DNA of 64,000 nucleotides from Cyanophora paradoxa CCMP329 (GCA_004431415.1 QPMI01000642.1:99275-163274); one strand, 5' to 3'. Positions 16,447 through 46,100 are shown, counted from the first letter of the stretch. A program made the numbers and translations. Notes: generated by a model not told the origin, from the letters alone.

Positions 16447-18829
16447 ATGGGCGGCACATCGTCGAAGATCTCATCGTGGAGGGACGAGGCTTCTTGCGTG
16501 GCGAAGGAAACCCCGTTGTACTCTTTAAAGGTAGCGCGGTACGCAGTGGAGAGCGACTTGCTGAATGCTTGCTTGGCAAAGGGCGCAACGTTCGCAAGCG
16601 CCAGCGGCGACACCACCTTGCCTTGCACACAGTGGTCCGCAACCGGCCGCCGCCTCGTGACGCCCGCGGCCTCCTCACGCGCACGCCGCCTCCCGCGTAG
16701 CCCGGCGGTGACGAAAGTGGAGACTTTCAGCGCACCGGACTGCAGCGGCACGTCCCTCTTCACCGCAACGTACAAGGGGGAAGCGCTCTCGGACCAGGAC
16801 CTCTTCACCTCGTGCGGCCGCGGGGCCGCCCTCGGCAAAGTGGGCACCGCGTACTACAAGGCGGCAGCGGGCGACATGGGCGGCACTGAGGCCGCCTGCA
16901 CCAAGTGGTGCGCCCGCCGCCGCGCCCCGGCCCGGCACCGGCGGCCGGCGCCCTGGGGGGCCGCGCGCGGCGCGCGCGAGGCCGACGCGCGGCAGCCCGC
17001 CGGTGACGGGCGTCTTTACGTACACCGACGGCGGCTGCACGAACAAAGGGCCCGCCTCGTACTACTACGGGGCCCTCGCGAAGGGCGCCCCCGCGCTCTC
17101 CGCCGACGAGGCCTGCGACGCGAAGGGCGCCCTCGCCTTCTCCGCCAAGGCCTTCGCCGGCGAGAGCGCCACCCCGATCGTCGGCTGTACCCCCTGGTTC
17201 CCGGACCCCGGTCCCCCCGGTCGACGTCGCGGGGCGTCCCCCCTTACCGCGGCGCGCGCAGCCCGGCGCGGAGCATCGTGCGGGCGTACCCGAGCGGAAA
17301 CTGCACGGCGGGGGCGCGGGACGCGGTGCAGGCCGCGAAGGATGCGCGGCTGTCGGCGCTCCTGGAGAAGAGCCTCGGGATGAGGGGGCTGGAGGAGGTG
17401 CGGGTCGCGCAGGACGCGGCCCTCCAAATGGCGCGCATCGTCGCGGCGTACGGGGGCGTGGAGGCGCTGCAGCAGGCGAGGGGCGCCGCCGTGTCCAAGC
17501 CCGAGGGCAGGACCGCCGCAGACGAGGCCGCGATCAAGGCCTACGACGACTTCACAGCCGCGGTGCGCCCGGGCCGGCGGGGCGGCCCTTGGGCGGGGGC
17601 GGCCCGCCGCGGCGCTGACTCGCGCGGCGCGGCGCGGCGGGGCGGGCGGGGGCAGTCCGTGCGGCACGAGGGCTTGACGGGCGGCCTGACGGAGGCGGAG
17701 GTGGACGAGGCTTTCCGGCTGGCGCTGGACGTGGTGGACGACCCGTACTACGTGAGCGCGACGGAGCGGGTCGTGGACGGGAAGCCGGCCGCCGTCCTCG
17801 CCGCCGTGAAGGAGCTCTGCGAGGGCGGCTTCAAGTACTTCCTCGGCTGGCGCGACGGCGACTCCTCTGCCCTCTCCAACGCCCTCTACGACACCGACAC
17901 CCCCTTCGACGCCACTTTCTCCGTCGCCAAAGGCACCGACCTCGGCCAGGAGATGGAGTGCAGCCCGTGGTGCGTGCCGCCCGCGCCCCGCGCCCGCGCC
18001 CGCGCCCGCGCTGAGCCGCGCCGGTCGCTGCAGCCGCACGCACAAGAAGACGGTGGAATGCATCCGCAACGGCACGAAGGTGTTCGATGCGCAATCGGCA
18101 GACGAGTGCGCACTCCCGCCCCCCCCCCCCCCCCCCCCACCCCACCCCACCCCCCCCACCCCCCCCCTCCCCTCCCCCCTTACATCCCCCTCCCCCTCTC
18201 CTCCTCCTCCCTCGCCTCCCCTCGTATCCCCCCGCGCCCTGGCCGGGTCCGACTCGCGGCGCGCAGGTGCAGGAGCCTGTACGATGGCGTGGATGAGAAC
18301 GAAGCGTATTTCTCGGGTTTGGAGGTCGAATCCCTTACCGTGCGTGCACGCGCCTCGCGCGCCCAGTTATAGGACCGGACCGAGCCGCGGCGGCGGCGGC
18401 GTCCGACCGGCGGCTGGGGTGGGGGCAGATCGAAACCGTCTGCACGCCCTGGGGCGGCTGCGAGGAGTTTAGGGAGCAGTTGTGGGTTTTGCCGCCCTGG
18501 CTCGGCCAGATCTCGCGCGTGGACGAAGCGAGGCAGGTGCGCACGCGCGGCCGGCGCGATCGCGAGCTGGCGCCGCGCCGTGCGCCCCGGCCCGACGCGG
18601 CGCGCGGGCCCCGCAGGAGGCGGAGGGGGGGAGGAGCTGGAGGCCGGCCTCGAGCTGGAGGAGGCCGTCCTCGCCGCCGACCTCCAGCTCGCCGCCTGCT
18701 GCGCCCCGGTGCGCCCCCGCCCCCGCCCCCGCCCCCGCCCCCGAGTCGCCCCCGCTGTGCGGGCGAGCCGCGTCCCCTCCCCCCGGCGCCCAGGACGCGG
18801 AGCTGGCGGAGGGGTTGCTCCCGCAGTGA
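16447..18829 (+). CDS. Multi-exon Cys-module protein of unknown function with an acidic C-terminus; probable distant relative of the 30-43 kb array gene
   Basis: Coding-like exons with GT-AG introns encode VETFSAPDCSGTSLFTATYKGEALSDQDLFTSCG, VFTYTDGGCTNKG, VRAYPSGNCTAG and KTVECIRNGTKVFDAQS, ending DAELAEGLLPQ*. The start MGGTSS fits an N-myristoylation pattern, but the true start is uncertain. There may be a homopolymer frameshift near 18630. Confidence 0.6.
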
Positions 18830-21933: not shown

Positions 21934-23667
21934 CTACGCGGTGGGGGCGCCGTCGCGGACGCCCATCTTGGCGAGCTCCCTCTGGATCGCCCGGTACAGC
22001 GTCTGCGCCTGCGCCGGCCCGACCCCGCGCTCAACCCCCGCAAAGCCCCTCTCCCGCGGCTCCCTCACGCACCTGCTTGGGGTCGAGCTCGCTCTGGCGC
22101 GCGTTCTCCATGTTGATCGTCTCCCAGATGGGGAGGCCCTCGTACTTGGGGAGCACGTGGAAGTGCACCTGCGCGGATTCGACCCCGCGGCGCGGGGCGC
22201 GGGGCGCGTGGCGGGGCGCGGGGCGGGGCGCGGGGCGGACGTGGGGGATGGCGGCGTCGACCATGTTCTGGCCCTCGAGGTCGAGGACCTCGCAGGGGTA
22301 ATCGGGGTGCACCTGCGTCTGCACCAGCACCTGGCACGTGTCCGAGTCCACCACCTTCGCCATCGCCGCCCCGATCTGCCCCCGCCCGCCCCCGATCGCA
22401 CCGCGCGGGACGGAGCGGGGGGGCGGGGCGGGGCGGGGGGCGGGCCTGGGAGGCGACGTAGAAGACGGGCCCGGCGACGTCGTGCGAGAAGTTCTCCAGG
22501 CTCGTGCAGTGGTCCGTCGGGATCACCAGCAGGTGCCTGCCCCCGCCCCCCGCGTCGGCCTCAGCCTCGGCCTCGGCGGCGGCGGCGGCGCGGGCGCTGG
22601 CCGCACCCCTTGCAGATCGGGCGCGGGTCAAGGAACACGGAGACGTCGGCGTTGCCGTAGATCTGGGGCGGGCGGGGAGGGTCGACCGCCGGGGGGTACG
22701 AGGCGCGAGGGCGGGCGGGGGCACCGCCATGCTGCCCTGGATGGAGAGAAGGTCCCCGGCGCGGGAGGCGAGACTGGCGGGGCGTCGGGACGGCTGCGGG
22801 AGCGGAGCGGGAGGGGGGTACGGCGCACTTGACGGGGATCTCCTCGAGGACGCTCTTGCAGACGCGGCTCATCGCCAGGTTCTCCGCGTCGTCCAGGCCC
22901 ACGCCTGTACCCCGGGCCGTCAGCCCCCGGGGTGCGGCGTTACGCGGGAGGGGTACCGCGGGAGAGGAGGTAGAAGATCATCTCCTCGGCGGCGGGCGTC
23001 AGGTAGTACCCCTCCTCCCAGGCCTGGGCCTTGCCCTGGAACGGGTTGCTCATCTGCGGCTGTGTGAGAGGGGCAAGGCCGATCGGGGCGCGGCGCGGCG
23101 CGGCGCGGCGGGCTGGGAGAGGCTGCGCGCCTTCTCCTTGGGGACGCGGTCGGCGGACTGGCAGAAGCAGCACTTGGCCATCGCCTCGCCGGTCATCTCG
23201 TCCTCGCCGACCTCGCGCTCGTTCTGCAGGTTCTTGAAGTACCACTTCGCCGCCCCGGCGAGCACCTCCACGTCGCCCGGCAGCCCTGCGCCGGCCCCGG
23301 GCCCCCTGATCAGCCGCCCGCGCCCCGCCGGCCCGCCGCCCGGCGCCAGCGGCGCACCGATGTCCTCGGGCTTGAGCGGCGGGAGGTGAGAGTTCGGCGA
23401 TTCGTCCGTGGGCAGGCTGCACGACGCCTGCTGCCGCGCGAGGCGGAACTCGGCCGAAGGTGCGCGCGGCTCGAAGCGACGACCCAGGAACTTGCTCTCC
23501 AGCTGCACGCTGCGTTTGCCCCGCCCTTCCGAAGCACTGCCGGTGCGCTGTGCGCCGGCGGCGTGCGCGGGGCAGGTTCCGGCCGCTGGTGCACGAAGAT
23601 CGGCGCTGGACGTCCGCGCGATGGTGAGGGTGCTTGGCTTCACGGCGATACCGATGAAGCCCGTCAT
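21934..23667 (-). CDS. HIT (histidine triad) family nucleotide hydrolase with an N-terminal extension
   Basis: Exons encode CCFC, IYGNADVSVFLDPRPICK|GHLLVIP and the triad IPH|VHFHVLP split by an intron. Stop after RDGAPTA. N-terminus MTGFIG is Ser/Ala/Arg-rich. Confidence 0.85.
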
Positions 23668-23886: not shown

Positions 23887-24612
23887 ATGAACTCGGAGCT
23901 GATCAACCCGTCGCCGATCATCTACGAGCCGCAGCACGCGCGCCGGGAGCACGGGAGCGTCAGCCACGGCGACGACGAGGACCGCGATGAGATCGACGCG
24001 TGGGACATTTTCGATATCCTGCACTGCCGCTCACGCCATAGTCGCATGTCTTCCTCTCCCCGCGAACCGCCTTGACCCGCGCACATCTGATCCGCGACAT
24101 CAACGACCCCGAGCACCCCCTGACGCTGGAACAGCTGAACGTCGTGGGGCCCGACCGCATCGACGTGAGCGATGCGAACAGCTACATCATGGTGCGCGGC
24201 GGCCGCGCGCCGATCTTGTGCCGCCCGCCTCCCGCTCACCCGCCGCAGGTGAAGTTCACGCCGACGGTGCCGCACTGCAGCATGGCGACGCTCATTGGCC
24301 TCTCCATGCGCGTCAAGCTCTTGCGCTGCCTTCCCTCGCGCTTCAAGGTCCGGCACATTCCGCCGCTCAGTCGTCGCGGCCGCGCGACGCGGCCTCCCCG
24401 CAGGTGGACATCAAGGTGTCCCCTGGCTCGCATGCGTCCGAGGCGGCCGGTGCGCCCTCCACCGCGCCGCCGCTCGCGCCTGCGCTCGCCGACGGCGCCG
24501 CGCGACAGTCAACAAGCAGCTGAACGACAAGGAGCGGGTCGCCGCGGCGCTCGAGAACAGCCACCTCCTCGACGTCGTCAACCGCTGCTTGAAGAATCGC
24601 ATGGAGCTGTAG
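23887..24612 (+). CDS. CIA2: MIP18 family / CIA2 (FAM96B/AE7-like) cytosolic Fe-S assembly protein
   Basis: Five exons encode [11 protein letters not shown]...IFD|[20 protein letters not shown]...|[24 protein letters not shown]...FK|[15 protein letters not shown]|[17 protein letters not shown]. Confidence 0.95.
24014..24084 (+). other. AT-AC U12-type (minor spliceosome) intron, 71 nt
   Basis: 5' end ATATCCTG, branch-site-like CCTTGAC ending 8 nt before the 3' end, terminal CAC. Removal restores the conserved [14 protein letters not shown]. Confidence 0.88.
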
Positions 24613-25631
24613 CGCCGATACCAAAGCACGCGGCCCGGCGGCTTCGAATTCGAATCTCCTGCGGACATCCTTTCGTTCTTAGAACACATCCGTCGATATC
24701 GCAGAACGCGCGCAAAACAGCCTCAGACAGTCCTAGCCTAGTACTGTAGCTATAGTAGACTTTGAGAGCAGCATGTACAGTTAGGACACTTTCGTGCAGT
24801 TTTAGAAGTTAGCGTTTATAAGAAAGCTATTCTTTACGTGCATCTAATAGTCATGCAGACTCGCAATGCCTTGCAGCTTGCATTTGCATTATCATGATCG
24901 GCCGCTTTCGGTCGGCGGCCCGGCCCTGCGGGATGCGGCCTACGATTTCCTCCGGACATCTTTCTCCTATCATGATCATCTGCCTAAACTCGCCCGAATC
25001 GTCCTGTATGGCCTCGTTGGCCTGGCTTTAGGCTATCGCTAGCGCTGCGGACCTTTCGCCAGCCTTGCAGGCCCTCGCCCCACGTGCACTGCGCCGGTTC
25101 TGAAAGCTAATATAAGCTTAAGGGAGTACAGCGTCGGTTCGAGATCGGTGGCGTGATCAGCGGAGAGACGATGGGCGGTCGATCGAAGCTAAAGAGACGA
25201 AGAAGATGAGGAGACGATATCGATATTGTAGCTATAGATCGGGAACCACGTTCCGAGCTCGAGCTCGACGCGATCGCGACTCCGAGGCTCAGAGCTAAAG
25301 ATGATGATGCTAATTTATAGTGGGAATGTCGACTCGGCCGGGCGAGTCGAATTCGAAGAATGGCCAGTACTAGTGCGCATGCGATCGCGCGGGCATGCGG
25401 GTGTCCGGGGGAGAGGCGTCAACAAGGGGAGGCCCTGAGGACCGGGGAGAGGGGCGGGAACGCGGGCCGGGCCGGGGAGGGAGGGGGTGGAGAAGGGGGA
25501 AGAGGGGTGGCCGGGGCCGGAGGCCCGGACATGCTGGGGGACGAGGCGGTGGGACCCGAAGGTTCGGGGGGTGGGGGGGAGGGGGGGAGGGGAAAGGGGG
25601 GGGAGGGAGACGGTGGCAGGTGAATTGTGCG

Positions 25632-28506: not shown

Positions 28507-28898
28507 ACGGTACTACTGTTACGGTAGCACCGTAAGTCCGTAGCACCTTCAAAGGCTTGCCCGCTCTTCTGGAATCTGGCCATGGACTCTGGGTCGGAGA
28601 CGGGATTCGGAGTCTAACCAGCTACTAGCTATAGTACTAGCTATAGGCTAGCGCCTGTGCCACGGTGATCAATGATGATGTACGATGTGTGGATCAGGGA
28701 TTCAGGGTGCCACGGTGATCGATTATAAGCTTAATTAAGTACCTCGTAGGTACTACTAGCAGGCTCTCACCCGCTCTTATGTCGGTGGGGGTACCGGTTA
28801 TCCGCGCCGTTGGTACTGCTAGGCAGTGCTAGCCGCTGAGCACTGCGGCTAGCTACCAGCAGCCTACCACTGCCTATTATATTGCTAGTTATTTGCTA

Positions 28899-29160
28899 CC
28901 GTGTGGCACTATAATACCGCGCCCACTTAATTACCGCGGTACCAAATTACCGCACCGAGAATTTGTTAAAACGCGGTAATTTGGTACCGCGGTAATAAGC
29001 TGCAGCCAAGTTGCTCCATACAGTACCCCCCACAATTACCGCCCCATACAAGCCTCGAGTTTTTAAAAACGCGGTAATTTGGTACCGCGGTAATTTTGTT
29101 CTAATGGCGGGCCGGAGTTAAACGCGGTAATTAGCGCCGCGGTAATTTCGTGCCACACGG
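28899..29160. mobile_element. Tc1/mariner-like MITE
   Basis: TA|CCGTGTGGCAC...GTGCCACACGG|TA, i.e. a TIR with a TA TSD. Internal AATTACCGCGGTACC motifs occur in both orientations. Confidence 0.7.
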
Positions 29161-29323
29161 TACTAGGCAGTCTAGGCTAGCTATAGGCCATAGCACACTC
29201 AGTGACTGTGACAGGCTACCGTAGTACCGGACCGTCGGACCGTACGCGTAGATCTAGACAACTTGCACTGCGGCAAATCATTGAATGCAGCAGCGGCATG
29301 GGCCCGGCCTCCCTTGGGCGAAT

Positions 29324-29807
29324 TAGGCTTGCGGCTAGCCGCTAGCGGGGTCCCGGGCCGGCTCCGAGGCTCGAGCCAAGCCTAGCCAGCCCGAAAAGCG
29401 GCTCGAGCGGCTAGCTAGTTGGGCTAGCCAGCCTAGCCTCGGCCGCTTTTCGCCGTCCCTAGCCGGCTAGCTAGTTGGCTATAGCTAGCTTCCTTCCCCC
29501 CCCATTTCAAGTTCCGCCCCCCCTCCGCTGGCCGACCTATAGCTAGCGCTAGCCCTGTTGGGCTAGTCCCTCCATGGCCAGCTCAGCCAGCTAGCTGGCG
29601 GCTGGGCCAGGCTCCCGGCTCGCCCCTCCGGCTGGGCTAGCGCTAGCTATAGCCCCTCAGGCTAGCCAGCCGGCTAGCCTCGCCCCGCGCTAGCCGGGCT
29701 TGCGAGCCGGCTCGCCATTCCCAAACGGCGGCTCGAGCCGCCCGCCAAAGTCGACGTCCGCTAGCCTAGCCGGCTTGCTAGTAGGCTAGGCTCGAGCCGC
29801 AAGCCTA
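29324..29807. mobile_element. TIR element (hAT-like ends) rich in GGCTAGCC motifs
   Basis: 13-bp TIR TAGGCTTGCGGCT...AGCCGCAAGCCTA. TSD not preserved. Confidence 0.55.
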
Positions 29808-30095: not shown

Positions 30096-33000
30096 ATGGC
30101 CAAACGCGCAACACCGGCCAAGTGTTGGGCCAACGCTGACTGCTCGGAAACCCCGGCGCGAACGATCGACAAGTGCGCGCATGTGACACTGACTCAGTGA
30201 TCATGAGCGGCACGGCGCGATAATCGTGATTCACGATCATCCGGCTGCAGCTCCAAACTGATATCAATCGCGCAGGAGCGGTCTTGTGTCTGACATTTGC
30301 TCGAAATCCACGCACATTGCCGGGATTCAGCGCATGCCCCCCGGGTCGACTGGGAGTGGCACGTGCGTTCCAGCCAAGCTGCTTTGTTACACTTCGACGT
30401 ACGTCCTTTAGGACTAGATCTACTTCAATCACATGCCTAGAGGCTCATGATCATGCGCCGCTGCGCGTATGTTTAATCTGCGCATGCCCGATCAGCGATT
30501 GCTCCGGGACCTACTCTCTGGGAAAAGACCCTGCTTCGGGAAGCTTTGTCAGTCAGTAGTGCGTATATATATGTCTTTGTTTCTTGGATATCACGATCAG
30601 CATTATCAGGAGCACTGATGATACTTATATGCCATGATGCACCAGCCAACCGGAGACGATGTCCGACGCCGAAGCCTTCGCTCGCTGCCCTGTGCGGCTC
30701 TTAACTTTCTGTTGCATCAGATCTCGTATGTTCAGAGCACCTATCATAGTATAAATGACTTGAATCTGTCGTGCGGCGCAGGCCGGCACTTGGAGCTTCA
30801 AGAACGGCGACAGCGCCGTGTGCCACGCCGCTCATCCGTTCATCGAATGCTACAAGAGCCTCGATTGCTCCATGGCCGGCTCGGATCCGGAGTCGGAGCG
30901 CACCTACGTCCTGGGAAACGACCCACCGTGCGACACTGCCTTTCATGCAATAATCCCGCTTCAGCATGGTCGTAATCTGATCGTACATATGCGTGCACGG
31001 GGTATATATACATGTGCAGTTCAAAATGTCCCGACTCAGCGAATTCGTTCACGAAAGGCGGCGATACGACATGCAAGCCAGCCAACCTGCTCTGTTTCGG
31101 CGACTAGTGAGCCCTCGCATTTGCAATTGGCGTCAATTTCCAATAAACTCTGACCACCGCGGCTGACAGCAAATGCGGCGGCACGCCCTCGATTGGCAAA
31201 GACGCCGCGGGCAACGCCGTCGATTTTTAGTGCGTTTCCTTTTTCGATCGCGCACGTCCTTGCAATTGTCTCGAGCAGCAGTGCGCTCGCTAATGTAGTT
31301 GGATGCACATGTGGCCACTTTTCTAGATCTTAAAATCGCCTTAGGGGCGGCGCCGGCCCAGCTGGCGGCGGAATGCGAAGTCCTTCACATATGAATACCT
31401 GATCCTCGAGTTGCGCAGCCAGCCGGAGGGGGTCTCGGACGAGGAAGCCTGGGCCCGCTGTCCGGTGCGTAAACTTGCATATACGTATCGATATCCGCGG
31501 CATTGAAATTGCTATCCTTTGCACGCACGCCGTACATCGATCTTTAATTTTTTGCCTTGCGTATGCATATGAATGTTCTAATTACAAGCCGGTTTTCAGG
31601 GCGGCACGCTCTCTGTCCGGGACGCCGGTTCGAACGAGTGTCGCGCAAATGACGTGCATGAGGGCATTGCCTGGTGCTTTGATTTCCCGTAATCACTGCC
31701 TGTGCTGTGATGCCTTCAAATATGTCTTCAAATATCTATCGCTTTGGTCCTTCGCAGCTTTTCCGATTCGTACTGTAACTCGACCCCAACTTGGGCGTTC
31801 GACGAGTCCAAGTGCCCGGCCGGCACTGTAGCCGTGCGCTTTCCAGACGTCGACCTCCCAGTATTCGTAATTATATAATGTCTGATCATGATCATGATTC
31901 CAACTGTCTGCAGACTAGCGGCAAAATCGTCGATGATTTGGGCAATCTGACGATGGGGAAGTGCGCTGCGACCAGCCTTACCTGGCAAGTCTAAGCCCGG
32001 CGTCCAAATGGCAAGCCGAATGACTCTCGTGCTGAGGCTCGAGCTCGCGATCGGCTGGCGCAGTTTTTGGACCGCTAACTGCGTGGGCCCCACCAAAGTC
32101 ACGAGCTTCGAGAAGTAGTGCGCGCGTTCCGAATCCTATCGCTCGGTTGCTTTTCTCGCAATCGACATAGAGGCCGCTGCTGCGTTCACTTTGGCTGGCG
32201 GCGCAACGCCGTAACGGGAAAGACCTTCAACTTCGAATTCGGTTCCTGATCCTCAGGATGCGCAGCCAGCCGGAGGGGGTCTCGGACGAGGAGGCCTGGG
32301 CCCGCTGTCCGGTGCGTATACGCAGCTGCAGCATTACAATTGCAATTGCCGCAGTGCTTTGGGCTCCAGTGCATTGCATTTGAATGCTCTAATTTTCCGT
32401 TGGGTTTCAGGCCGGTACGATCGCTGTCAAGGAAGCCGGTTCGACCGAGTGCCGCACAGACGGCGTGCATGGGGGCACTGCCTGGTGCCCATGCTTGTGT
32501 TCATGTCTCATTATTTCTCCTTATCGCTGCCCTGTTATCTAATGCCTTCTGATATTTATCGTGTCGGTTTCGCGCAGCTTTAATGATCGGAACTGTAGCA
32601 AGACTCCCGGGAGTCCAACATGGGTGTTCGACAGGTCCAAGTGCCCAGCTGGCACTATGGCCGTACGCGTGCGCAATTTGCAAACATATACACACCAAGC
32701 ATGGCTCTGTAGAGATATCTGCAGCTGCCATCAACATGCATTGTACACACGTACGCAATTCAGGTCGCGTCGAAGGAAACTTTGGGGCAATGCGCGCCGG
32801 CAAAGCTTACTTGGTCAGCCTAGTATGCCGACTGGCGGACTCCTGCGCGCTGAGGTTGGCTCCGCGCAGCTACTCGAGCACCGATTGCCGGGGTGAAGGC
32901 ACGGCCACAAGCTTCGAGAAGTAGTGCGCTCGAGCTCGCGATCCCTTCTCTTAATCTTGCAACTGCGCATGAATGGCCCCTTCAAGGCTTTTCTTGCGAT

Positions 33001-36000
33001 ACACATCGTCATAGGGGCTGCTTCAGCAGCTGTGTTAAAAGTTCACCCCTGGCGGAGCAATGGGCACGACCTTCAATTTCCTGATCCTCGGGTTGCGCAG
33101 CCAGCCGGAGGGGGTCTCGGACGAGGAGGCCTGGGCCCGCTGCCCGGTGCGTTTACGCAGCTGCAGCATTAATTTCAATTGCCGCAGTGATTTGGGTTCC
33201 AGTGCATTGTATTTGGATGATCTAATTTTCCGTTGGGTTTCAGGCCGGTACGATCGCTGTCAAGGAAGCCGGTTCGACCGAGTGTCGCACAAACGGCGTG
33301 CATGGGGGCACTGCCTGGTGCCCATGCTTGTGTTCATGTTTCATGATATCTCCTTATCGCTGCCCTGTTATCTAATGCCTTCCGATATCTATCGTTTCGG
33401 TTTCCCGCAGCTTTATTGATCGGTACTGTAGCAAGACTCCAACATGGGTGTTCGACAAGTCCAAGTGTCCGGCTGGCACTATGGCCGTGCGCAATTTGCA
33501 AACATATACATATTAAGCATGGCTTTGTATAGATTTCTGCAGCTGCCATCAATATGTACACATGTACGCATTTCAGGTCAAGTCGAAGGAGTCTTGGGGG
33601 CGATGCGCGCCGGCAAAGCTTACTTGGTCAGCCTAGTATGCCGACTGGCGGACTCCTGCGCGCTGAGGTTGGCTCCGCGCAGCTATTCGAGCACCGATTG
33701 CCGGGGTGAAGGCACGGCCACAAGCTTCGAGAAGTAGTGCGCTCGAGCTCGCGATCCCTTCTCTTAATCTTGCAACTGCGCATGAATGGCCCCTTCAAGG
33801 CTTTTCTTGCGATACACATCGTCATAGGGGCTGCTTCAGCAGCTGTGTTAAAAGTTCACCCCTGGCGGAGCAATGGGCACGACCTTCAATTTCCTGATCC
33901 TCGGGTTGCGCAGCCAGCCGGAGGGGGTCTCGGACGAGGAGGCCTGGGCCCGCTGCCCGGTGCGTTTACGCAGCTGCAGCATTAATTTCAATTGCCGCAG
34001 TGATTTGGGTTCCAGTGCATTGTATTTGGATGATCTAATTTTCCGTTGGGTTTCAGGCCGGTACGATCGCTGTCAAGGAAGCCGGTTCGACCGAGTGCCG
34101 CACGAACGGCGTGCATGGGGGCACTGCCTGGTGCCCATGCTTGTGTTCATGTTTCATGATATCTCCTTATCGCTGCCCTGTTATCTAATGCCTTAAGCTT
34201 ACGATATCTATCGTTTCGGTTTCCCGCAGCTTTAATGATCGGAACTGTAGCAAGACTCCAACATTGGTGTTCGACAAGTCCAAGTGTCCGGCTGGCACTA
34301 TGTCCGTGCGCAATTTGCAAACATATACACACCAAGCATGGCTCTGTAGAGATATCTGCAGCTGCCATCAACATGAACGCACGTACGCGTACGCATTTCA
34401 GGTCAGGTCGAAGGAAACTGGGGGGCAATGCGCGCCGGCAAAGCTTACTTGGTCAGCCTAGTATGCCGACTGGCGGACTCCTGCGCGCTGAGGTTGGCTC
34501 CGCGCAGCTACTCGGGCATCTATTGCCGGGGTGAAGGCACGACCACAAGCTTCGAGAAGTAGTGCGCTCGAGCTCGCGATCCCTTCTCTTCAGCTTGCAA
34601 CTGCGCATGAATGGCCCCTTCAAGGCTTTTCTTGCGATACACATCGTCATAGGGGCTGCTTCAGCAGCTGTGTTAAAAGTTCACCCCTGGCGGAGCAATG
34701 GGCACGACCTTCAATTTCCTGATCCTCGGGTTGCGCAGCCAGCCGGAGGGGGTCTCGGACGAGGAGGCCTGGGCCCGCTGCCCGGTGCGTTTACGCAGCT
34801 GCAGCATTAATTTCAATTGCCGCAGTGATTTGGGTTCCAGTGCATTGTATTTGGATGATCTAATTTTCCGTTGGGTTTCAGGCCGGTACGATCGCTGTCA
34901 AGGAAGCCGGTTCATCCGAGTGCCGCTCAAACGGCGTGCACGGGGGCATTGCCTGGTGCCCATGCTTGTGTTCATGTTTCATGATATCTCCTTATCGCTG
35001 CCCTGTTATCTAATGCCTTAAGCTTACGATATCTATCGTTTCGGTTTCCCGCAGCTTTAATGATCGGAACTGTAGCAAGACTCCAACATGGGTGTTCGAC
35101 AAGTCCAAGTGTCCGGCTGGTACTATGGCCGTGCGCAATTTGCAAACATAAATTAAACATACCAAGCATGGCTCTTTAGAGATATCTGCAGCTGCCATCA
35201 ACATGTACACACGTACGCATTTCAGGTCGAGTCGAAGGAAACTTGGTGGCAATGCGCGCCGGCAAAGCTTACTTGGTCAGCCTAGTATGCCGACTGGCGG
35301 ACTCCTGCGCGCTGAGGTTGGCTCCGCGCAGCTACTCGAGCACCGATTGCCGGGGTGAAGGCACGGCCACAAGCTTCGAGAAGTAGTGCGCTCGAGCTCG
35401 CGATCCCTTCTCTTAATCTTGCAACTGCGCATGAATGGCCCCTTCAAGGCTTTTCTTGCGATACACATCGTCATAGGGGCTGCTTCAGCAGCTGTGTTAA
35501 AAGTTCACCCCTGGCGGAGCAATGGGCACGACCTTCAATTTCCTGATCCTCGGGTTGCGCAGCCAGCCGGAGGGAGTCTCGGACGAGGAGGCCTGGGCCC
35601 GCTGCCCGGTGCGTTTACGCAGCTGCAGCATTAATTTCAATTGCCGCAGTGATTTGGGCTCCAGTGCATTGTATTTGGATGATCTAATTTTCCGTTGGGT
35701 TTCAGGCCGGTACGATCGCTGTCAAGGAAGCCGGTTCGACCGAGTGTCGCACAAACGGCGTGCATGGGGGCACTGCCTGGTGCCCATGCTTGTGTTCATG
35801 TTTCATGATATCTCCTTATCGCTGCCCTGTTATTTTATGCCTTACGATATCTATCGTGTCGGTTCTCCGTGTACGTAGCTATGAGGATTGGAACTGTAGC
35901 AAGCCTCCAACATGGGTGTTCGACAAGTCCAAGTGTCCGGCCGGAACTACGGCCGTGCGTGTTTTGCAAATGAACATATATATATACCAAGCTTAAGCCT

Positions 36001-39000
36001 GGATCTGTATATATATATATATCTGCCATCAATTCGCGTTTCAGATCAAGTCAAACGACGTTAATCGGGGGTGGTGCACTCCGAACAAGCTTGTCTGGCA
36101 AGCCCGGAATGGCTATCCGATTGTGAACGATCGCGACTCTCATGCTGAGGCTGGGCCTGCACAGCTTTCCGGATAGATACTGCTCGGACGCCGCCACGGT
36201 CACGAGCTTCGAGAAGTAGTGCGCTCGCTCCTATATATATCGCGTGGTTGCTTTTCTTGCAATAGCCATTAGGGGCTGCTGCTGCATCAACCGTCAACGT
36301 TCACCCCCTGGCGGCGCAATGGGCGCAACCACAAACTTCCTGATTTTTGAGTTGCGCAGCCAACCGGAGGGGGTCTCGGACGAGGATGCCTGGGCCCGCT
36401 GCCCGGTGCGTCTACGCAGCATTTATATTGCTTGCTTTCAAGGCTTTGCGCGCACTCCATAGGCATATATCCCTGGGTTCCAGTGCATTGCATGTTGATG
36501 TTCTTATTTTCTGTTGGCCCTGGATTTCGAATTCAGGTCCGTACGATCGCTGTCAAGGAAGCCGGCTCGACCGAGTGCCGCACAAACGGCGTGCATGGGG
36601 GCACTGCCTGGTGCTCTGATTCCCTAATTTCACTGCCCAGTGCTCACATGCGCATGTCCTGGTCCTGCGCAGCTTTTCCACTCCGACATGTAGTAGCGAG
36701 ACTGCGCATGCAACTTGGGTGTTCGACAAGTCAAAGTGCCCGGTCAACACTGTCGCCGTGCGCGTTATGCGAGCACTCAATGCCAAGCACGGCCACGTAA
36801 AATGCTTCCTACATCCCGCGCCGCAGATCAAGTCAAAGGATGTGAATTCGGGGCAGTGCACTCCAAACAAGCTTGTCTGGCAAGCCCGGCATGGCTATCC
36901 GAACGCGTACGGCTCATTCGCTAAAGCTCGGCTTGCGCAGCTTCTCAAACGCGAACTGCTCGGGTGCCGCCACGGTCACGAGCTTCGAGAAGTAGTGCGC
37001 TCGCTCCTATCGCGTGGTCGCTCTTCTCGCAATTGCCATAGGTTCTGCTGCTGCGTTAGCCGTTAACGTCTCCCCCCGCGGCCGGCTGGCGACGCCACGG
37101 GAAAGACCTTCAACTTCGAATTCGGTTCCTGATCCTCGGGATGCGCAGCCAGCCGGAGGGGGTCTCGGACGAGGAGGCCTGGGCCCGCTGTCCGGTGCGC
37201 GTTCCCGTCAATCGATTTCTTGTCGTAGGATCGATATCCGGATCCGGAGGTACTGTTGTTAAGCTTGCTGTTGTTTTTGGATTGTACAGGGCGGTACTGT
37301 TTCGATTCAGGAAGCTGGCTCGGTCTGCAGCTCAAAATTGTATTCTGGGGTTGCCTGGTTCGTGGGTTTAGGGCTGCCGGTGCTCTGATTCCCTAATTTC
37401 ACTGCCCAGTGCTCACATGCGCATGTCCTGGTCCGGATCCTGCGCAGCTTTTCCACTCCGACATGTAGTAGCTCGACTTCGGCGACTTGGGTGTTCGACA
37501 AGTCAAAATGCCCCGCCGACACTGTCGCCGTGCGCATTATGCCATGCGAACACTTAATGCCGATTGCAAGCACGACCAATCACGAAGTTTTATCCGCACC
37601 ACGACAAATGCTTTCTTCATCCCGCAGATCAAGTCGAAGGATATAAATTCGGGAGAGTGCACTCCGAACAAGCTTGTCTGGCAAGCCGGCGCCCGGCATG
37701 GCTATCCGAACGCGTACGGCTCATGCGCTAAAGCTCGGCCTGCGCAGCTTCTCAAACGCGAACTGCTCGGGTGCCGCAACGGTCACGAGCTTCGAGAAGT
37801 AGTGCGCTCGCTCCTATCGCGTGGTCGCTCTTCTCGCACTCGCCATAGGTTCTGCTGCTACGTTAGCCGTTAACGTCTCCCCCCGCGGCCGGCTGGCGAC
37901 GCCACGGGAAAGACGTTCAACTTCGAATTCGGTTCCTGATCCTCGGGTTGCGCAGCCAGCCGGAAGGGGTCTCGGACGAGGAGGCCTGGGCCCGCTGCCC
38001 GGTACGTCTTTAAGTGCTCTCTTTAAATGTTTCTTGGCTCTCTATAGCTTGATTTCGATTTGCGATGCCTTCGAAATTCCGTTCAGTAAACGGCTGATTG
38101 AGGTTTTCATCGATGTATACGTTTACCCTCGTTTTAGGAGGGCACACGATCCGTCAAGGAAGCGCATTCAGGTGATTGCAAAAAAGACATCCATTTCGGC
38201 ACTTACTGGTAACTTTTAGTAATCATATAATCAGCACTTTCATTCATATAGGATCCGCATTAATCCGGAATCCTTCCCACACCATCGCGATCGTGCAGCT
38301 TCTCCAATCCAAACTGCGGAGGCTTCCCTAACTGGGTGTTCGACGCGTCACAGTGCCCGGCAGAGAGTGCTGCTGTGCGAGCCGCGGCCTGCTTTTTCGT
38401 TTCCCGACCGCTGCCCTGATCTCATGATCTCATTATCGCCCTTTCGTTTCGCATTCGATTCTTGCAGATAATCAAGCGAGGCGTGCCCGATGGCACATGC
38501 ACGAGCACCAAACTCACGTGGTATATATATATATATGCCCCATCCACTTTTGCCGTTCCGAGATATCGATACGCCGTGCACAGCTTCTCGAACGGCGACT
38601 GCTCCGGGAAGTCTGCAACAGGCAAAGACCCCGCTTCGGGCAACCCCGTCACTGAGTAGTGCGCAATCACTCGGGCCCCGTGGGCTAATCGATGAACTCG
38701 GGAGGACTTTGCACGGCTTAAGATAGAGCGGGAATATCCGTGAAGTACCAAGGCAAGAGATGCATCAGATCGGCCATCGGGTGCACGTGCACGTGTAGCT
38801 AATTATAATCATACAACACAAAGCTGTCCGATCGAACTGCATGCCCCTTGGCCTAGTACTGATCACAAGCGCACTACCACAGCCAACCGGAATCGATGTC
38901 CGACGCGGATGCGTTCGCCCGCTGCCCTGTGCGGCGTCTTTTTCCGCTCTCTACGTGCAGCTATTTATATAAACCCTCCCTCATTGCTCTTTTGCATTAC

Positions 39001-42000
39001 GCAGACTGGCACACTGAGCTTCAAGAATGGCGGCGCTGCCGAATGTCACGCTGCTCATCCGTTCATTACGTGCTACAAAGATACCAGTTGTCAGGTTCCT
39101 GGAATTTCCGTCTTGGACAGGTCAACGTGTCCGCCCAGCACTCAAGCCGTCCGCGTGCGTTTGGAACGTCGAACGACCTTGAACGATGACGTTGACGTTT
39201 GATTCTCCTCAAGCTAATCTCTGCACATGCGCATGCCGATTTCGCAGACGATATCAGCGCAAAGCCAGAGTTCCTGCGCTCCCTTTTGTCGTGTTGACGA
39301 AGTGCATGGGGAAACTGCCTGGTGCTCAGAGTTTTCAATTTAAGTGCCCAGGGCTCTACTAGTACTGCGCAGGCCTTGTAATATATATAAAGTATACGTA
39401 TACGATATTTCCGAAGCTCTTATAACTAACGTCTTGGTCCTCTGCAGCTTTTCCACTCCGACATGTAGCTCGACTTCGGCGACTTGTGTGTCCGACAAGT
39501 TGAAGTGCCCGGCCGACACTGTAGCCGTGCGTGTTATGCGAGCACCCAGAGCCAAGCGCGGCTTATAGAATGAAGTATTATCCGCCCACGAAAAATGTTT
39601 CCTACATCCCGCGCCGCAGATCAAGTCAAAGGATGTAAATTCGGGGCAGTGCACTCCAAACAAGCTTGTCTGGCAAGCCCGGCATGGCTATCCGAACGCG
39701 TACGGCTTATTCGCTAAAGCTCGGCTTGCGCAGCTTCTCAAACGCGAACTGCTCGGGTGCCGCCACGGTCACGAGCTTCGAGAAGTAGTGCGCTCGCTCC
39801 TATCGCGTGGTCGCTCTTCTCGCACTCGCCATAGGTTCTGCTGCTACGTTAGCCGTTAACGTCTCCCCCCGCGGCCGGCTGGCGACGCCACGGGAAAGAC
39901 GTTCAACTTCGAATTCGGTTCCTGATCCTCGGGATGCGCAGCCAGCCGGAGGGGGTCTCGGACGAGGAGGCCTGGGCCCGCTGTCCGGTGCGCGTTCCCG
40001 GCAATCGATTTCTTGTCGTAGGATCGATATCCGGATCCGGAGGTACTGTTGTTAAGCTTGCTGTTGTTTTTGGATTGTACAGGGCGGTACTGTTTCGATT
40101 CAGGAAGCTGGCTCGGTCGCTTGCAGCTCAGAAGTGTATTCTGGGGCTGCCTGGTTCGTGGGTTTAGTTTGTTTGCGGCTGCTACCGCGTCGACGTCGTT
40201 ATATATAGTTTAACGAACGTTCCTGCGCAGCTTCTCTGGATTGAATGCGGGTTGCGAGCGTGATCCTAAGTGGGTTTTCGACAAGTCGAAATGCCCGGCC
40301 GACACTGTAGCCGTGCGCGTTATGCGAGCACTCAATGCCAAGCACGGCTTATAAAATGAAGTTTTATCCGCCCACAAAAAATGCTTCCTACATCCCGCGC
40401 CGCAGATCAAGTCAAACGACGTTAATCGGGGGTGGTGCACTCCGAACAAGCTTTTATGGCAAGCCCGGCATGGTTTTCCGATCGCGAACGACTTTCATGC
40501 TGAGGCTGCTGGGACTGCACAGCTATCCGGACAAATTCTGCGTGGGCCCCGCCACGGCCACGAGCTTCGAGAAGTAGTGCGCTTGCAATTGCTCCTATCG
40601 CGTGGTCGCTTTTCTTGCAATAGCCATTAGGGGCTGCTGCTGCATTAACCGTTAATTATAACGTTCACCCCTGGCGGCGCGATGGGCACGTCCTTCAACT
40701 TCGAATTCGGTTCCTGATCCTCGGGTTCCGCAGCCAGCCGGAGGGGGTCTCCGATGAGGAGGCCTGGGCCCGCTGCCCGGTACGCAGCATCAATATTGCT
40801 TGCCATTGTGTGCACGCTATAAATCGACCTTAGTATGCGTAACTTGCATTTCAATGCGTACGGTCAAATCCTAATATTAATCAAGCCGGTTACGTTTACA
40901 GGGTGGCACGCGCGCATATCGGGAGGCTGGTTCGACCGAGTGCCGCGCAAACGACGTGCATGCGGGCACCGCATGGTGCATATAATTGCATTCAAAATTC
41001 GTGATTTCGAAATTCCCGTTATCGCTGCGCATGCCCTATACGTATACACTGATGCCTTACAATATCTCTCGCTGGTTCTTCGCAGCTATAAAAATGGGGA
41101 CTGTAACTGGACTTCAACATGGGTGTTCGACAAGTCCAAGTGTCCGGCCGACACTATCGCCGTGCGCATTATGCAAACGAACATATACCAAGCATGGACC
41201 TATCTGCCTTCAACTCGCGTTTCAGATCAAGTCAAAGGACTTTAATCTGGGGGAGTGCACTCCGAACCCGAACAAGCTTGTCTGGCACGCCCGGCATGGC
41301 TATCCGATCGCGAATTCGAACGCCTCTCATGCTGAGGCTGGGACTGCGCAGCTTCTCAAACGCGAACTGCTCGGGTGCCGCAACGGTCACGAGCTTCGAG
41401 AAGTAGTGCGCTCGCTCCTATCGCGTGGTCGCTCTTCTCGCACTCGCCATAGGTTCTGCTGCTACGTTAGCCGTTAACGTCTCCCCCCGCGGCCGGCTGG
41501 CGACGCCACGGGAAAGACGTTCAACTTCGAATTCGGTTCCTGATCCTCGGGATGCGCAGCCAGCCGGAAGGGGTCTCGGACGAGGAGGCCTGGGCCCGCT
41601 GCCCGGTACGCGTTCCAAGCAATCTGGATTTCGAGGTGTTAAGCTTGGTTTTCGTAATTATAAACGTTTTCGGATTGTACAGGGTGGTACCCTTTCGATC
41701 AAGGAAGCTGGCTCAGCCGATTGCAGCTCAAAAGTGTATTTTGGGGCTGCCTGGTTCGCGGAAGTTGTTTTTCTGCTGCCACCGCGCCGCTGTTTTTATT
41801 CGATCGCCCACACCCGCGCACGAACGTCACTTAGTTATAACAAACGTTGCTGCGCAGCTTCCCCAAATACAATGCGGGCTGCCGGCACTTCCTAGCTTCT
41901 TCGTGGGCTTTCGACAAGTCAAAATGCCCCGCCGACACTGTCGCCGTGCGCATTATGCCATGAGAACACTTAATGCCGATTGCAAGCACGACCAATCACG

Positions 42001-43117
42001 AAGTTTTATCCGCCCACGACAAATGCTTTCTTCATCCCGCAGATCAAGTCGAAGGATATAAATTCGGGAGAGTGCACTCCGAACAAGCTTGTCTGGCAAG
42101 CCCGGCATGGCTATCCGAACGCGTACGGCTCATGCGCTAAAGCTCGGCCTGCGCAGCTTCTCAGACGAGAACTGCTCGGCCGCGGGTCGCGTCACGGCCA
42201 CGAACTTTGAGAAGTAGTGCGCTCGCTCCTATCGCGTGGTCGCTTTTCTCGCAATCGCCATAGGAGCCGCTGCTGCCATCACTATAATTATAAGCGTTCA
42301 CCCCTGCTGGCGGCGTCATGGGAAAGACCTTGAACTTCGGTTCCTGATCCTCGAGTTGCGCAGCCAGCCGGAGGGGGTCTCGGACCAGGAGGCCTGGGCC
42401 CGCTGTCCGGTACGTCTTTAAATGCATTGTTTAATGTTTTTTGGTTCTCTAGATCTATAGCTTGATTTCGATCTGTGGCGCCATCCATTCATTGGACGGC
42501 TGATTGAGGGTTTTCATCGATACCATCGTCTTAGGCGGGCACACGAGCCGTCAAGGAAGCGCATTCAGCTGAATGCAAAAAGGACATCCATTTCGGCACT
42601 TCCTGGTAATCGGCACTATCATTCATGTTTGATCCGCATTGATCCGGAATCCTTACCGCACCCTCGCGATCGTACGCGTGCAGCTACTCCGATTTGAACT
42701 GCCAGAAAAATCGAACGTGGGCATTCGACGCGTCGCAGTGCCCGGCAGAGAGTGCAGCTGTGCGAGCCGCGGCCTTGAACGATAACGTTATCGTTTGATT
42801 CTGCAAAAGCTGACCTCTGCACATGCGCATGCGGACCCGGGAATTCGTAGACGATGGCGGTTTCAGGCCCCCTTTCGGGTTCTTGCGTTCCCTTGAGCTC
42901 TCCAATTCTCGACGACGAGATGGCTGTCATCGATATCGATATTGCAGAGGACGCGGCATTCGAAGTCGAGGCTCGCCTTGCGCTTCTAATTTCTTTTGTG
43001 CCGCAGCTGCAGCTGCAGTTCCCTTTCCAAACTCGGCTTACATGTACGTGCACATGTCGCGCATGCGCAGGATCCGGAGCTTGGCTCGGATTACGCCGAA
43101 TTCGAAGCCAGCTCTGA
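30096..43117 (+). CDS. Large micro-exon gene: 15 tandem ~100-aa Cys-rich modules (roughly 1500+ aa), function unknown
   Basis: A 46-nt exon (QPEGVSDEEAWARCP or a variant) starts at 30646, 31419, 32266, 33101, 33914, 34739, 35563, 36360, 37149, 37956, 38883, 39942, 40734, 41560 and 42364. In most units it is followed by four more phase-conserved exons. In the units I translated, spliced exons are stop-free and indels are multiples of 3. The 5' start and final exon are uncertain. Confidence 0.8.
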
Positions 43118-46100
43118 CGCGCTATGCCAAGACAATGCGTATGAGGTGCGGAAATATATTAATTTTATATGACTCGATTCAATGATTTTAACTCGACTTC
43201 TTCAAAGCAGTCTGGCCTCTAGGGTCTTGGAATGCGGATGATCATGAGGCGCGGCCTGCTTGCAATTGGTGCACGCGGAGAGCTCTGGTACATGTGGAAG
43301 GACGTCATCCCACGGCCCGCGGCCACACGCTGTAGCTAATCAGACTATCATACCAAATTGTAAAAAAGATATCAGACTGTACATGTGCACGTGTGAAGGG
43401 GAAGTGCATGCGCAATATTAATGCCGGCGCCGAGGAGGACAGGAGACGGGTTGGCTAGACTGCCGGCTCCTAGCCTCCTATGGGCGCTGGGCGGGGGGGA
43501 GGCGGGGGAGGGGGCAAGGGGGGGGGGGGGGGGGAGGCGGGATCGGGATCGGGAGGAGGAGGCGGGGGGGAATGGGGGGGCGGGATCGGGAGGAGGTGGG
43601 GGGAGGGAAGGGGAGGAAGGGGGTGCGGGGTGCTCGTGGGGGGGGGGGGGGGGGGGGGGGAGGCGGGGGACGACCTGCAGCTGGCCATGGGCCGGGAGGC
43701 CCCCCAGAAAGGGCCCGGGGGTGGCCATGGGTGGCATGGGGCGGGGGGACCGGCACGCGGACGGAGATGAGGGTTTATAATTCAATGATTAAGGCCCACG
43801 GCCAGCCTGGCAGGGGGACCTGGGAGCTCAAGGGGCGCGACTCGGCGATGCAGATCTTTTCTAGCTAGGCAGAGCGGGGGCTTCCTATATATCTTTGGAC
43901 CGTTGTCTTCTCCAAATCTGCGCGGATGGTCCTTAATATTAACTAGCAGACCGCCCCCGGCCATGTGCAAGTGCGGCAAGTGCGGGCCGCGCGCGGAGGT
44001 GCAAGGGGGGGTACTTGTACAAATTCAGGGTTGGAATACAGGGTACAGGGGCGGCGGGTCGGGAAGCAGGCGGACCGGCAGGTGGCGCCGGCGCCGGGCC
44101 CTGCACACAGCCTAGGCCTGCGCAGAGCCGAGGCGTCAGCTTGTCCCGGACAGCGGCGGCGCCGGGGCAAGGCCCAACGGCGGTGGCCGGGTGAGGTGCA
44201 CGTGTGCAGCAGCGGCGGCGGGGCGAACCTGAAGTCGACGAAGCCGAGGCAGCGGGCGGGGCGGCGGAGCTCGCCCCGCCGCGGACAGCGGCGGCGCGGG
44301 GGCGAGGTCCAACCCGGCGCGGAGTACTAGTACTTGGAGCGCGGAGCAGCGCCGCCATCATCTGCTACGGAGCGCCGGCCGCGGGTCAAGACACGCGCGC
44401 GTGGCGCCGAGGCGTGCACGAGGCGCCCGAGCGGGCAAGCGCGTCGTAACCGCGCGGGCAAGCTGAAGCAGCGGGTAGAGCGGAGGGCGGGAGAGCGGCC
44501 ACGGGTGGACAGCCTGCGCAGCGCCGAGGCGTCAGCGCGCCCGCGGCGAGGCCCAGGGCGCGAGGCGGGCCTTGCCGCAACGAGTGCACTTGCGAAGCGA
44601 AGTGCTTGCCCCAACGAGTGCATTTCCCGCCCGGATATCGACTGGCGCCATTCCCCCCTGCTCGAGTCTCGATCCGACGGAAACTCGCCGAGTCGCAGGA
44701 GCTGTTTTTTCCGGCGCCCGGCCCGGTACAACAGGTACGTATACTTGACGCGGCCTAGCGCTAGCGGGCCGCGCGCTGCTTCTCGATCCCAGGTATGTAT
44801 GACAGAGTTTGTAGAGCGCATTGAGAGCAATCAGGAGCACGTGGTCCGGCGCATATAGCGATAGCTGGTGAGGAGCGAGCTGGACATGTTTGCGCAGCCC
44901 CGCCAGTGCATTTTTTTCCGCCGCTCGCAGCGGCTACGATGCGATCACACCTATACGAGAGTGCATGCAAAGAATCGCATCTTACAAAAATTGCTAACAC
45001 AGAAAGTACGCAGCAGCAATTCACCAGGGGAGCAAGGGAGGGGTACCCCCCCTTGCAATTTAACTAGGGGCCCGGCCGCGATTTTCGCGCCGGGGGTGCA
45101 AGGGGGAATCCGGGATCTTGAGAAAGAGTCCTAGTGGCACGCACATGCGTGGGGCAGAACGACCCCGGCCCAGTGCGCGCGGCAGGTTAACGTTGGAAGT
45201 GTAAAGATAAACACAGAGTATGATTGAAAAAATGCTAAGTTATAACTTATTACTTAAGACGCAAGTGGACGTCGACACTTCGAAAAAAACTCAGCTAGCC
45301 GCTAGTAGCACGGCCGCCCGAGCCTCGAGGTCCAAATCCTATTGGCCCGTCCCCGATCTGCGCCATCGCAAATGAGAACACATGTACAAGCAGTCGACTC
45401 GGCGTTCCGCGTTGAGAGTCTTGAGACCGCGCTCGGCGGGCGACGGCGGGGAGGATTTGCATTAGCACACAACAACAACTACTAGGAGTTTCACATCGCT
45501 CAGCTTATCTCTCCGACTAAATAACACTGGGGACCGTCGAGTGCTGTGCTCTGTCTACGATTGGTTGCGAGGTTTTGCTTCTAAGTACCTACCTACTTAC
45601 ACAACCGGCCTAGTTATAATATCATCTATAACTAGGGCTAGATTTGGTAATGAAGGGAGAGAAGGTGAAGTAGAGGGGCTGAGTTGAGAGGGAGAAAGGG
45701 GAAGCTTGATGCGCACGCCGTCGGCCCCCATTGGAGCCGCCGACTCTGGCCGGATTACGCCGGCACGCCTCAGGGCACCAAATCCCCCCCGCCTCCCTCC
45801 GCCTCCAGCCGCCCCAGTCCTCACCCCGCCCCGTCCCCCCTTACCCACCACTGGTTCATGAGCCCGCGGCGGAAACATTGAGGGACTGGCGCTCTGCCAG
45901 CCATCGACGTCATACTGCCTTTGCAGCCTGTCAAGAGCAACTGACAGAAAGCCAATATGCTTTGTCAACGGCACCCAAAGGAAGGTAGAATGGTGTGGTG
46001 GTGCCTTTTAAGGCAAAAGGAAGAAGCCATGCGGGAGCTACTAGTGCTGACCGAGGCAAGAAACTAGTGCAAGGGACTACTCGCTGATCAGAAGGCAAAT

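Follow-up and report, generated by a model that had tools for sequence, protein, structure and literature searches.

A satellite-like array in Cyanophora paradoxa reads as a gene of about 78 exons for a chain of four-cysteine modules

Within a 64,000-nucleotide stretch of the Cyanophora paradoxa CCMP329 genome (hereafter the window), a tandem array at 30.1-43.2 kb with a period of ca. 790-850 nt resembles repetitive DNA but is, with splicing deduced from the sequence and from a paralog, one intact gene of ca. 78 tiny exons. It belongs to an already known kind, the tandem cysteine-rich repeat protein under concerted evolution, though with an undescribed module. As our best explanation, to which we assign a probability of only around 0.4, we propose that its product acts outside the cytosol as a multivalent binder, in the form of an extended chain whose small domains are pinned by disulfides and differ in their loops. 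The case illustrates how, in an algal genome rich in introns, a large intact gene that is apparently missing from protein databases can lie concealed in satellite-like DNA, and it defines a small cysteine module without a described family.

Gene model and splicing

Joined from the ATG at 30096, which has an in-frame stop a short way 5' of it, 76 exons (30096-42759; Table 1) give 4,947 nt or 1,649 codons with 129 cysteines and not a single stop, and the other spliced frames of this model contain 14-60 stops each. The exon scan, for which an AG on one side, a GT or GC on the other and the right phase served as criterion, recovered all exon classes, and exons a to e with their splice sites and phases lie where a preliminary description of this DNA had placed them. 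The 15 five-exon cassettes of that description hold for most units, but unit 1 has only four exons (b and c are fused and its other introns shifted), unit 11 has six, and unit 15 is limited to exons a to c. Similarly, the splice sites that had been called conserved are canonical throughout except that eight donors are GC instead of GT, all of them on exon d, which leaves 67 GT-AG and 8 GC-AG introns; the 75 acceptors comprise 72 CAG and 3 TAG. Introns measure 56-224 nt (median 95), in agreement with the short and dense introns published for C. paradoxa, whose genome has 9.2 introns per gene with a mean of 86 bp (PMC6704402). As had been noticed before, exonic indels come in multiples of three and intronic ones do not: all 11 distinct non-modal exon lengths are off the mode of their class by multiples of three, which is true of only 12 of the 38 intron lengths (Fisher p = 4.6e-5). 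The 76 exons contain no stop, frameshift or broken splice site, with units up to ca. 29% apart at amino-acid-changing sites.

Every junction between exons e and a cuts a Tyr codon as TA/C (e.g., 32922-32924), and an unspliced reading there meets a TAG immediately. More generally, retention of 71 of the 75 introns would truncate the chain or shift its frame, and intron retention could yield shorter chains.

Beyond the 76 exons, one to three more that code for an acidic tail bring the total to ca. 78 and the protein to ca. 1,730 aa. The gene had been thought to end at 43117, but a stop is met there only if the probable intron at 42998-43070 is read through, and a last exon starting at 43071 scores better. 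Tail endings judged by codon log-odds and hydropathy put the stop near 43170, or near 43220 with one further intron, and the three candidate endings give proteins of 1,726-1,737 aa.

Table 1. Coordinates in the window of the array gene and of a separate gene with four-cysteine repeats
Feature	Position	Strand	Remarks
Separate annotated gene tig00021501_g21957.t1 (P0014) with its own four-cysteine repeats	16447..18829	+	EukProt model match, one exon 100% identical
Three 5' exons	30096-30172, 30276-30398, 30496-30558	+	Start ATG, module 0, beginning of module 1
Unit 1, divergent paralog-like type, four exons	30646-30691, 30782-30927 (b+c fused), 31020-31106, 31170-31229	+	
Unit 2, five exons	31419..32117	+	Exon d with GC donor
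Units 3-6, youngest block	32266..35385	+	
Unit 4, example exons	a 33101-33146, b 33244-33317, c 33411-33486, d 33577-33626, e 33683-33736	+	
Units 7-9, five-exon mosaic cassettes	35563..37801	+	Exon d with GC donors
Units 10-11, divergent block	37956..39787	+	Unit 11 of six exons and three modules
Unit 11, fused b+c exon	39005-39148	+	
Unit 11, chimeric exon	39248-39321	+	5' part and preceding intron like the terminal intron/exon junction
Units 12-14, five-exon mosaic cassettes	39942..42216	+	
Unit 15, exons a, b and c only	42364..42759	+	Nearest to unit 10
Tail	42851..43171	+	Exon from 42851, probable intron 42998-43070, acidic last exon from 43071 (splice-site scores)

Architecture of the protein

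Cut by the rule of a cysteine followed by an aromatic residue, the predicted protein falls into 32 four-cysteine modules of 42-64 aa, in which a long type (exons e+a+b, 56-64 aa) alternates with a short type (exons c+d, 42-53 aa) that is homologous to it (hhalign probability 95, E 3e-8). Two four-cysteine half-modules per unit had been described, and such modules are indeed present, but in the register e+a+b / c+d and with three of them in unit 11. Each module follows the pattern C-[FYW]-x4-6-C ... C-P ... C with gaps of 6, 13-33 and 14-23 residues between its cysteines, and none contains a CxxC pair; 30 of the 32 are distinct in sequence, and all nine loop sequences given in the preliminary description are present. 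The last module obtains its fourth cysteine from the exon at 42851, after which the acidic tail begins. Cysteine makes up 7.8% of the protein, and its 13 N-glycosylation sequons are about as many as composition predicts. The eight conserved cysteines per unit that had been noted earlier stand insofar as the four-cysteine scaffold is kept, but two modules, both in unit 11, carry a fifth. One of these, at 39448-39526, has also lost the conserved Trp and Phe; the other is the chimeric module that precedes it.

Relatives of the module

With the fused exon at 30782 as query, an exhaustive search over 1.84 billion cluster representatives returned one true relative, the 186-aa C. paradoxa protein tig00020563_g11214.t1 (P0005; EukProt EP00741), annotated elsewhere in the same genome. 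We rejected the other seven of its eight matches, to a bacterial Ig-like protein, fish factor H, beta-propellers and further repeat proteins, since their scores are sums over weak matches to repeats of an unrelated kind. No near-identical protein was found among these representatives with that exon as query, which is why the array gene seems to be missing from the collection and to be unannotated. P0005 is identical to residues 5-196 of the array model at 95 of 192 positions (49%, E 2e-62) and, from P0005 residue 3, colinear with it over the first six predicted junctions; the homology starts at the start codon in both genes. This colinearity supports the splice model and the start site, with the qualification that P0005, too, is a predicted gene model rather than a transcript. 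The two genes share the module, its order and the leaderless start position, but P0005 begins with Gly2, is annotated with three modules plus a partial fourth, and is an uncharacterised prediction rather than a member of a described family.

The module had not been recognised as one of a known family, and our searches agree: Pfam and NCBIfam (queried with single exons and P0005) and the ESM Atlas gave no match, PDB sequences no significant one, and metagenome, viral and prokaryote contigs as well as viral structures none either. A word-based homolog search was blank with exon c5-intron-d5 as query and with P0005 found only P0005 itself. No relatives beyond Cyanophora appeared with these short or single-sequence queries, which remote kin may escape, and the module thus seems so far to be Cyanophora-specific and without a described family.

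Four-cysteine repeats also occur in the window in P0014, which is 41% identical to its paralog P0015 (tig00021035_g17243.t1). It has a Gly2/Ser6/Lys7 start, three four-cysteine repeats that end in CxxCP, a helical middle part and no Pfam match. The likeness of P0014/P0015 repeats to the array module is borderline (10-12 bits, E 0.07 within the window; hhalign probability 1.3), and P0014 is possibly a distant relative of it. The acidic tail and the end of P0015 look alike, but not significantly so (p 0.28-0.82).

Fold and cysteine pairing

While AlphaFold on the single sequence of P0005 reached a pLDDT of only 32, one short P0005 module supplied with a 14-row alignment of natural pieces gave a model of four strands (pLDDT 65.6, pTM 0.43). 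The CC chemokine fold pairs its cysteines 1-3/2-4, as predicted for the module, and has a C-terminal helix which the module lacks; a sequence-profile match to CCL13 over 27 residues (E 0.12) is not significant, and we discarded this candidate as no chemokine reached Z 2 in a wide structure search. GCC2/GCC3 (Ephrin_rec_like) or TNFR-like repeats such as those of Chlamydomonas MST1 likewise form a long algal tandem cysteine-rich region, with C-P-x-G-T ... G-x-x-x-C, but the array gene lacks their CxxC, Pfam match, signal peptide and Ig or polyproline parts.

The structural neighbour ranked first by two programs is residues 28-79 of properdin, found in six of seven Foldseek rows (E 4-10, for a model of pLDDT 66) and in the top four rows of a VIA search over 48,161 chains (Z 2.4-2.5, 45 residues, rmsd 3.5-3.7); with Z at 2.4-2.6 overall, the match lies within noise. 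This segment is a short TB domain with bridges 32-56, 43-72/73 and 57-75 (PMC6713926). It shares with the module an aromatic residue after the first cysteine, and the modal spacing of the short type (13 residues from the second to the third cysteine, 16-17 from the third to the fourth) agrees with properdin 43-56 and 56-72 (PMC6713926), and the four cysteines would correspond to the pairs 1-3 and 2-6. If the alignment ends are taken as ungapped, the first and fourth cysteines fall on properdin 32 and 72, and the module would retain two TB bridges and lack both cysteines of the third. On the other hand, TB (8-Cys) domains have six to eight cysteines, and their central helix bears a CC or CCC motif (PMC3306419, PMC2724076), whereas the module has four and a single C-P in place of this defining motif; proteins with TB domains are moreover secreted, of animals, and interspersed with EGF or TSR domains (PMC3306419, PMC6713926). 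No TB domain of fibrillin, LTBP or follistatin reached Z 2, and P0005 and single exons found no TB profile match in Pfam or PDB. We give roughly even odds to a TB-like fold, as a lead on how the module may fold and not as a claim of membership; by the same weak structural analogy, each module may form disulfides 1-3 and 2-4. More speculatively, the cysteine pattern of P0014 would fit TB bridges 2-6 and 4-7 and in this way complement those of the array (1-3 and 2-6).

Selection and recombination in the array

Across the 11 regular units, pairwise dN/dS is 0.24-0.90 in 52 of 55 pairs and ca. 1 in three pairs of the youngest block. Exon a is nearly frozen (0.03 nonsynonymous vs. 0.69 synonymous changes per site) and the stretch before the third cysteine is constrained (0.37 vs. 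1.57), whereas the loops between the first two cysteines change at about the synonymous rate (1.43 vs. 1.48 and 1.50 vs. 2.27). By these rates the scaffold is under purifying selection, in keeping with the constant cysteine scaffold and variable loops of the preliminary description. Its further notion of diversified loops fits their variety, with selection as the cause finding no statistical support in the array at large: over all 11 units the loops show no significant replacement excess (binomial p = 0.78), and synonymous change is raised in them as well.

Some signs of such selection come from units 3-6, whose members 4-6 are pairwise 95-96% identical over the whole unit. Variable sites are rare in their introns d (0 of 56) and e (2 of 177) and more frequent in exons d (8 of 50) and e (5 of 54), and one codon specifies four amino acids in the four copies. 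Replacement to synonymous changes number 14:1 in the loops and 7:9 elsewhere (p = 0.006, for a region picked after seeing the data), the excess ranging over p = 0.006-0.016 in post hoc tests, and changes do not cluster significantly by codon (p = 0.15). These post hoc signs suggest diversifying selection on the loops of the youngest copies.

Units are mosaics in which the nearest neighbour switches within a unit at 96-100% identity. Unit 9, for instance, is closest to unit 12 in intron a (99%), to unit 14 in intron c and exon d (98-100%) and to unit 13 in exon e (100%), and unit 11 harbours a second, internal version of the terminal intron-exon junction, joined to a b exon. From this we infer that unequal crossing-over and gene conversion, acting on blocks of exons with their introns, made the array grow and keep reshuffling it; owing to the constant phase of each exon class, such shuffling keeps the frame and gives new loop combinations. 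A collapsed or duplicated assembly is unlikely, with no two units more than 96% identical over their whole length. Abalone VERL, in which unequal crossing-over or gene conversion homogenises the tandem modules and terminal units are divergent (PMC2704960), and similar concertedly evolving arrays resemble the array gene in both respects. VERL is unrelated in sequence, though, and in the array gene five introns interrupt each repeat and the mosaic units combine several subtypes.

N-terminus and location

The surface location that had been suggested, or a secreted one, is not borne out by targeting signals. The array protein has no signal peptide (N-terminal hydropathy maximum 0.27), no convincing hydrophobic start exon lies within 4 kb upstream of 30096, and the three tail models, all hydrophilic, contain no membrane span or GPI signal (maximum 19-residue hydropathy 1.1-1.2). 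What the paralog offers instead is a start that resembles a myristoylation site. The N-myristoylation consensus has Gly2 and Lys7 and, at position 6, a small residue, and the starts of P0005, P0014 and P0015 share all three. The glycine is required for this modification, which comes with membrane enrichment (PMC6460961). The array gene has Ala2 in place of Gly2, and deleting the six bases after its first four yields a Gly2 start like that of P0005; this copy may have lost such an anchor through a 6-nt insertion after the ATG.

Possible function

In our preferred reading as a multivalent binder, the product would be a beads-on-a-string protein of ca. 1,730 aa made of 32 small beta-rich modules and an acidic tail, each module being held by its two predicted disulfides like a stripped-down TB domain. 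The loop after the first strand and the hairpin before the fourth cysteine would contact variable partners such as microbes, viruses, predators or other cells, and an oxidising destination, either the cell surface or an extrusome, would be reached by a leaderless route. Export without a leader is the main difficulty of this proposal; Leishmania HASPB sets a precedent for acylation-directed export of a leaderless protein (PMC8182054), but the array copy lacks the Gly2. This obstacle would disappear if the protein were an ordinary secreted cysteine-rich repeat protein whose upstream signal-peptide exon has been missed both here and in the annotation of the paralog. An AG immediately precedes the ATG at 30096, and tiny exons are common in the C. 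paradoxa genome (PMC6704402), but that AG belongs to an AAG, used by none of the 75 acceptors, and the 4 kb upstream as well as the P0005 homology beginning at both start codons speak against it, making a hidden leader quite improbable. The absent leader is taken at face value if the protein is cytosolic or attached to the inner membrane, its cysteines binding zinc or another metal or buffering redox, in a family that is anchored by myristoyl groups and has lost the anchor here through the insertion. The Gly2 starts of P0005, P0014 and P0015, and that obtained here by the removal of six bases, fit such an internal protein, which we nonetheless regard as rather unlikely. Cysteine gaps like those of the module are unusual for zinc sites, CxxC pairs are absent, the cysteine content is far under that of metallothioneins, and the structural neighbours are disulfide domains.

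Alternatively, the chain might be a structural rod or filament, be it mucocyst content, a flagellar hair or a periplast-associated element, in which nothing but disulfide scaffold and length matters and the variety of loops reflects drift and patchy gene conversion. Loop dN/dS near 1 with raised synonymous change is what such a filament would predict, mucocysts are present in C. paradoxa along with mastigonemes of two kinds (PMC6704402), and the MST1 filaments of Chlamydomonas are polymerised by a long cysteine-rich domain (PMC11015965). We still find a filament somewhat doubtful, given that the signal peptide, Ig domains and polyproline helix of MST1 are all absent from the array protein and that amino-acid-changing differences in the exons of units 3-6 exceed the differences in their flanking introns. 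That the array is a silent or decaying satellite-like pseudogene seems very improbable: although no database protein corresponds to it and one module of unit 11 lacks some conserved residues, 76 exons have stayed free of stops, frameshifts and broken splice sites despite the divergence of their units at amino-acid-changing sites.

For the multivalent binder, a fuller version would see in it a glaucophyte family of leaderless, normally myristoylated proteins built from a minimal two-disulfide TB-like domain that is not animal-only, here as a 32-mer whose binding loops owe their diversity to selection and their new combinations to phase-symmetric shuffling of exon cassettes, and which, exported with no signal peptide, serves the alga in variable, multivalent recognition; taken as a whole, we judge this version distinctly unlikely. 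If the loops do bind variable partners, the gene would be a candidate recognition or defence protein of glaucophytes, a lineage poor in molecular immunity data, and its module a two-disulfide scaffold already varied by nature. A module of the disulfide type in a leaderless protein would indicate non-classical export or an unusual compartment in Cyanophora, and the TB resemblance, if true, would mean that this fold predates animals.

Neighbouring features

On the 5' side of the array, palindrome-rich DNA at 28897-29807 contains short inverted repeats (28929-28953/29071-29095, 100%, and 29324-29363/29768-29807) that are possibly small mobile elements. Further upstream lie a spliced gene at 24072-24749 (+) with a weak FeS_assembly_P match (E 0.001) that is MIP18/CIA2-like, a gene at 21934-22730 (-) in which a HIT-like His motif is visible by eye (its unspliced piece gave no Pfam match), and a GC-rich spliced gene at 1-5040 (-) with class III nucleotide-cyclase-like motifs, again recognised by eye (Pfam was blank on unspliced pieces). 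On the other side of the array, 51164-52858 (+) encodes a gag-like 564-aa ORF with a CCHC zinc knuckle (Pfam E 1.7e-6) that is followed by repeated sequence at ca. 53-55 kb, and 55683-60727 is a tandem array of 36 copies of 139 bp with ca. 79% GC.
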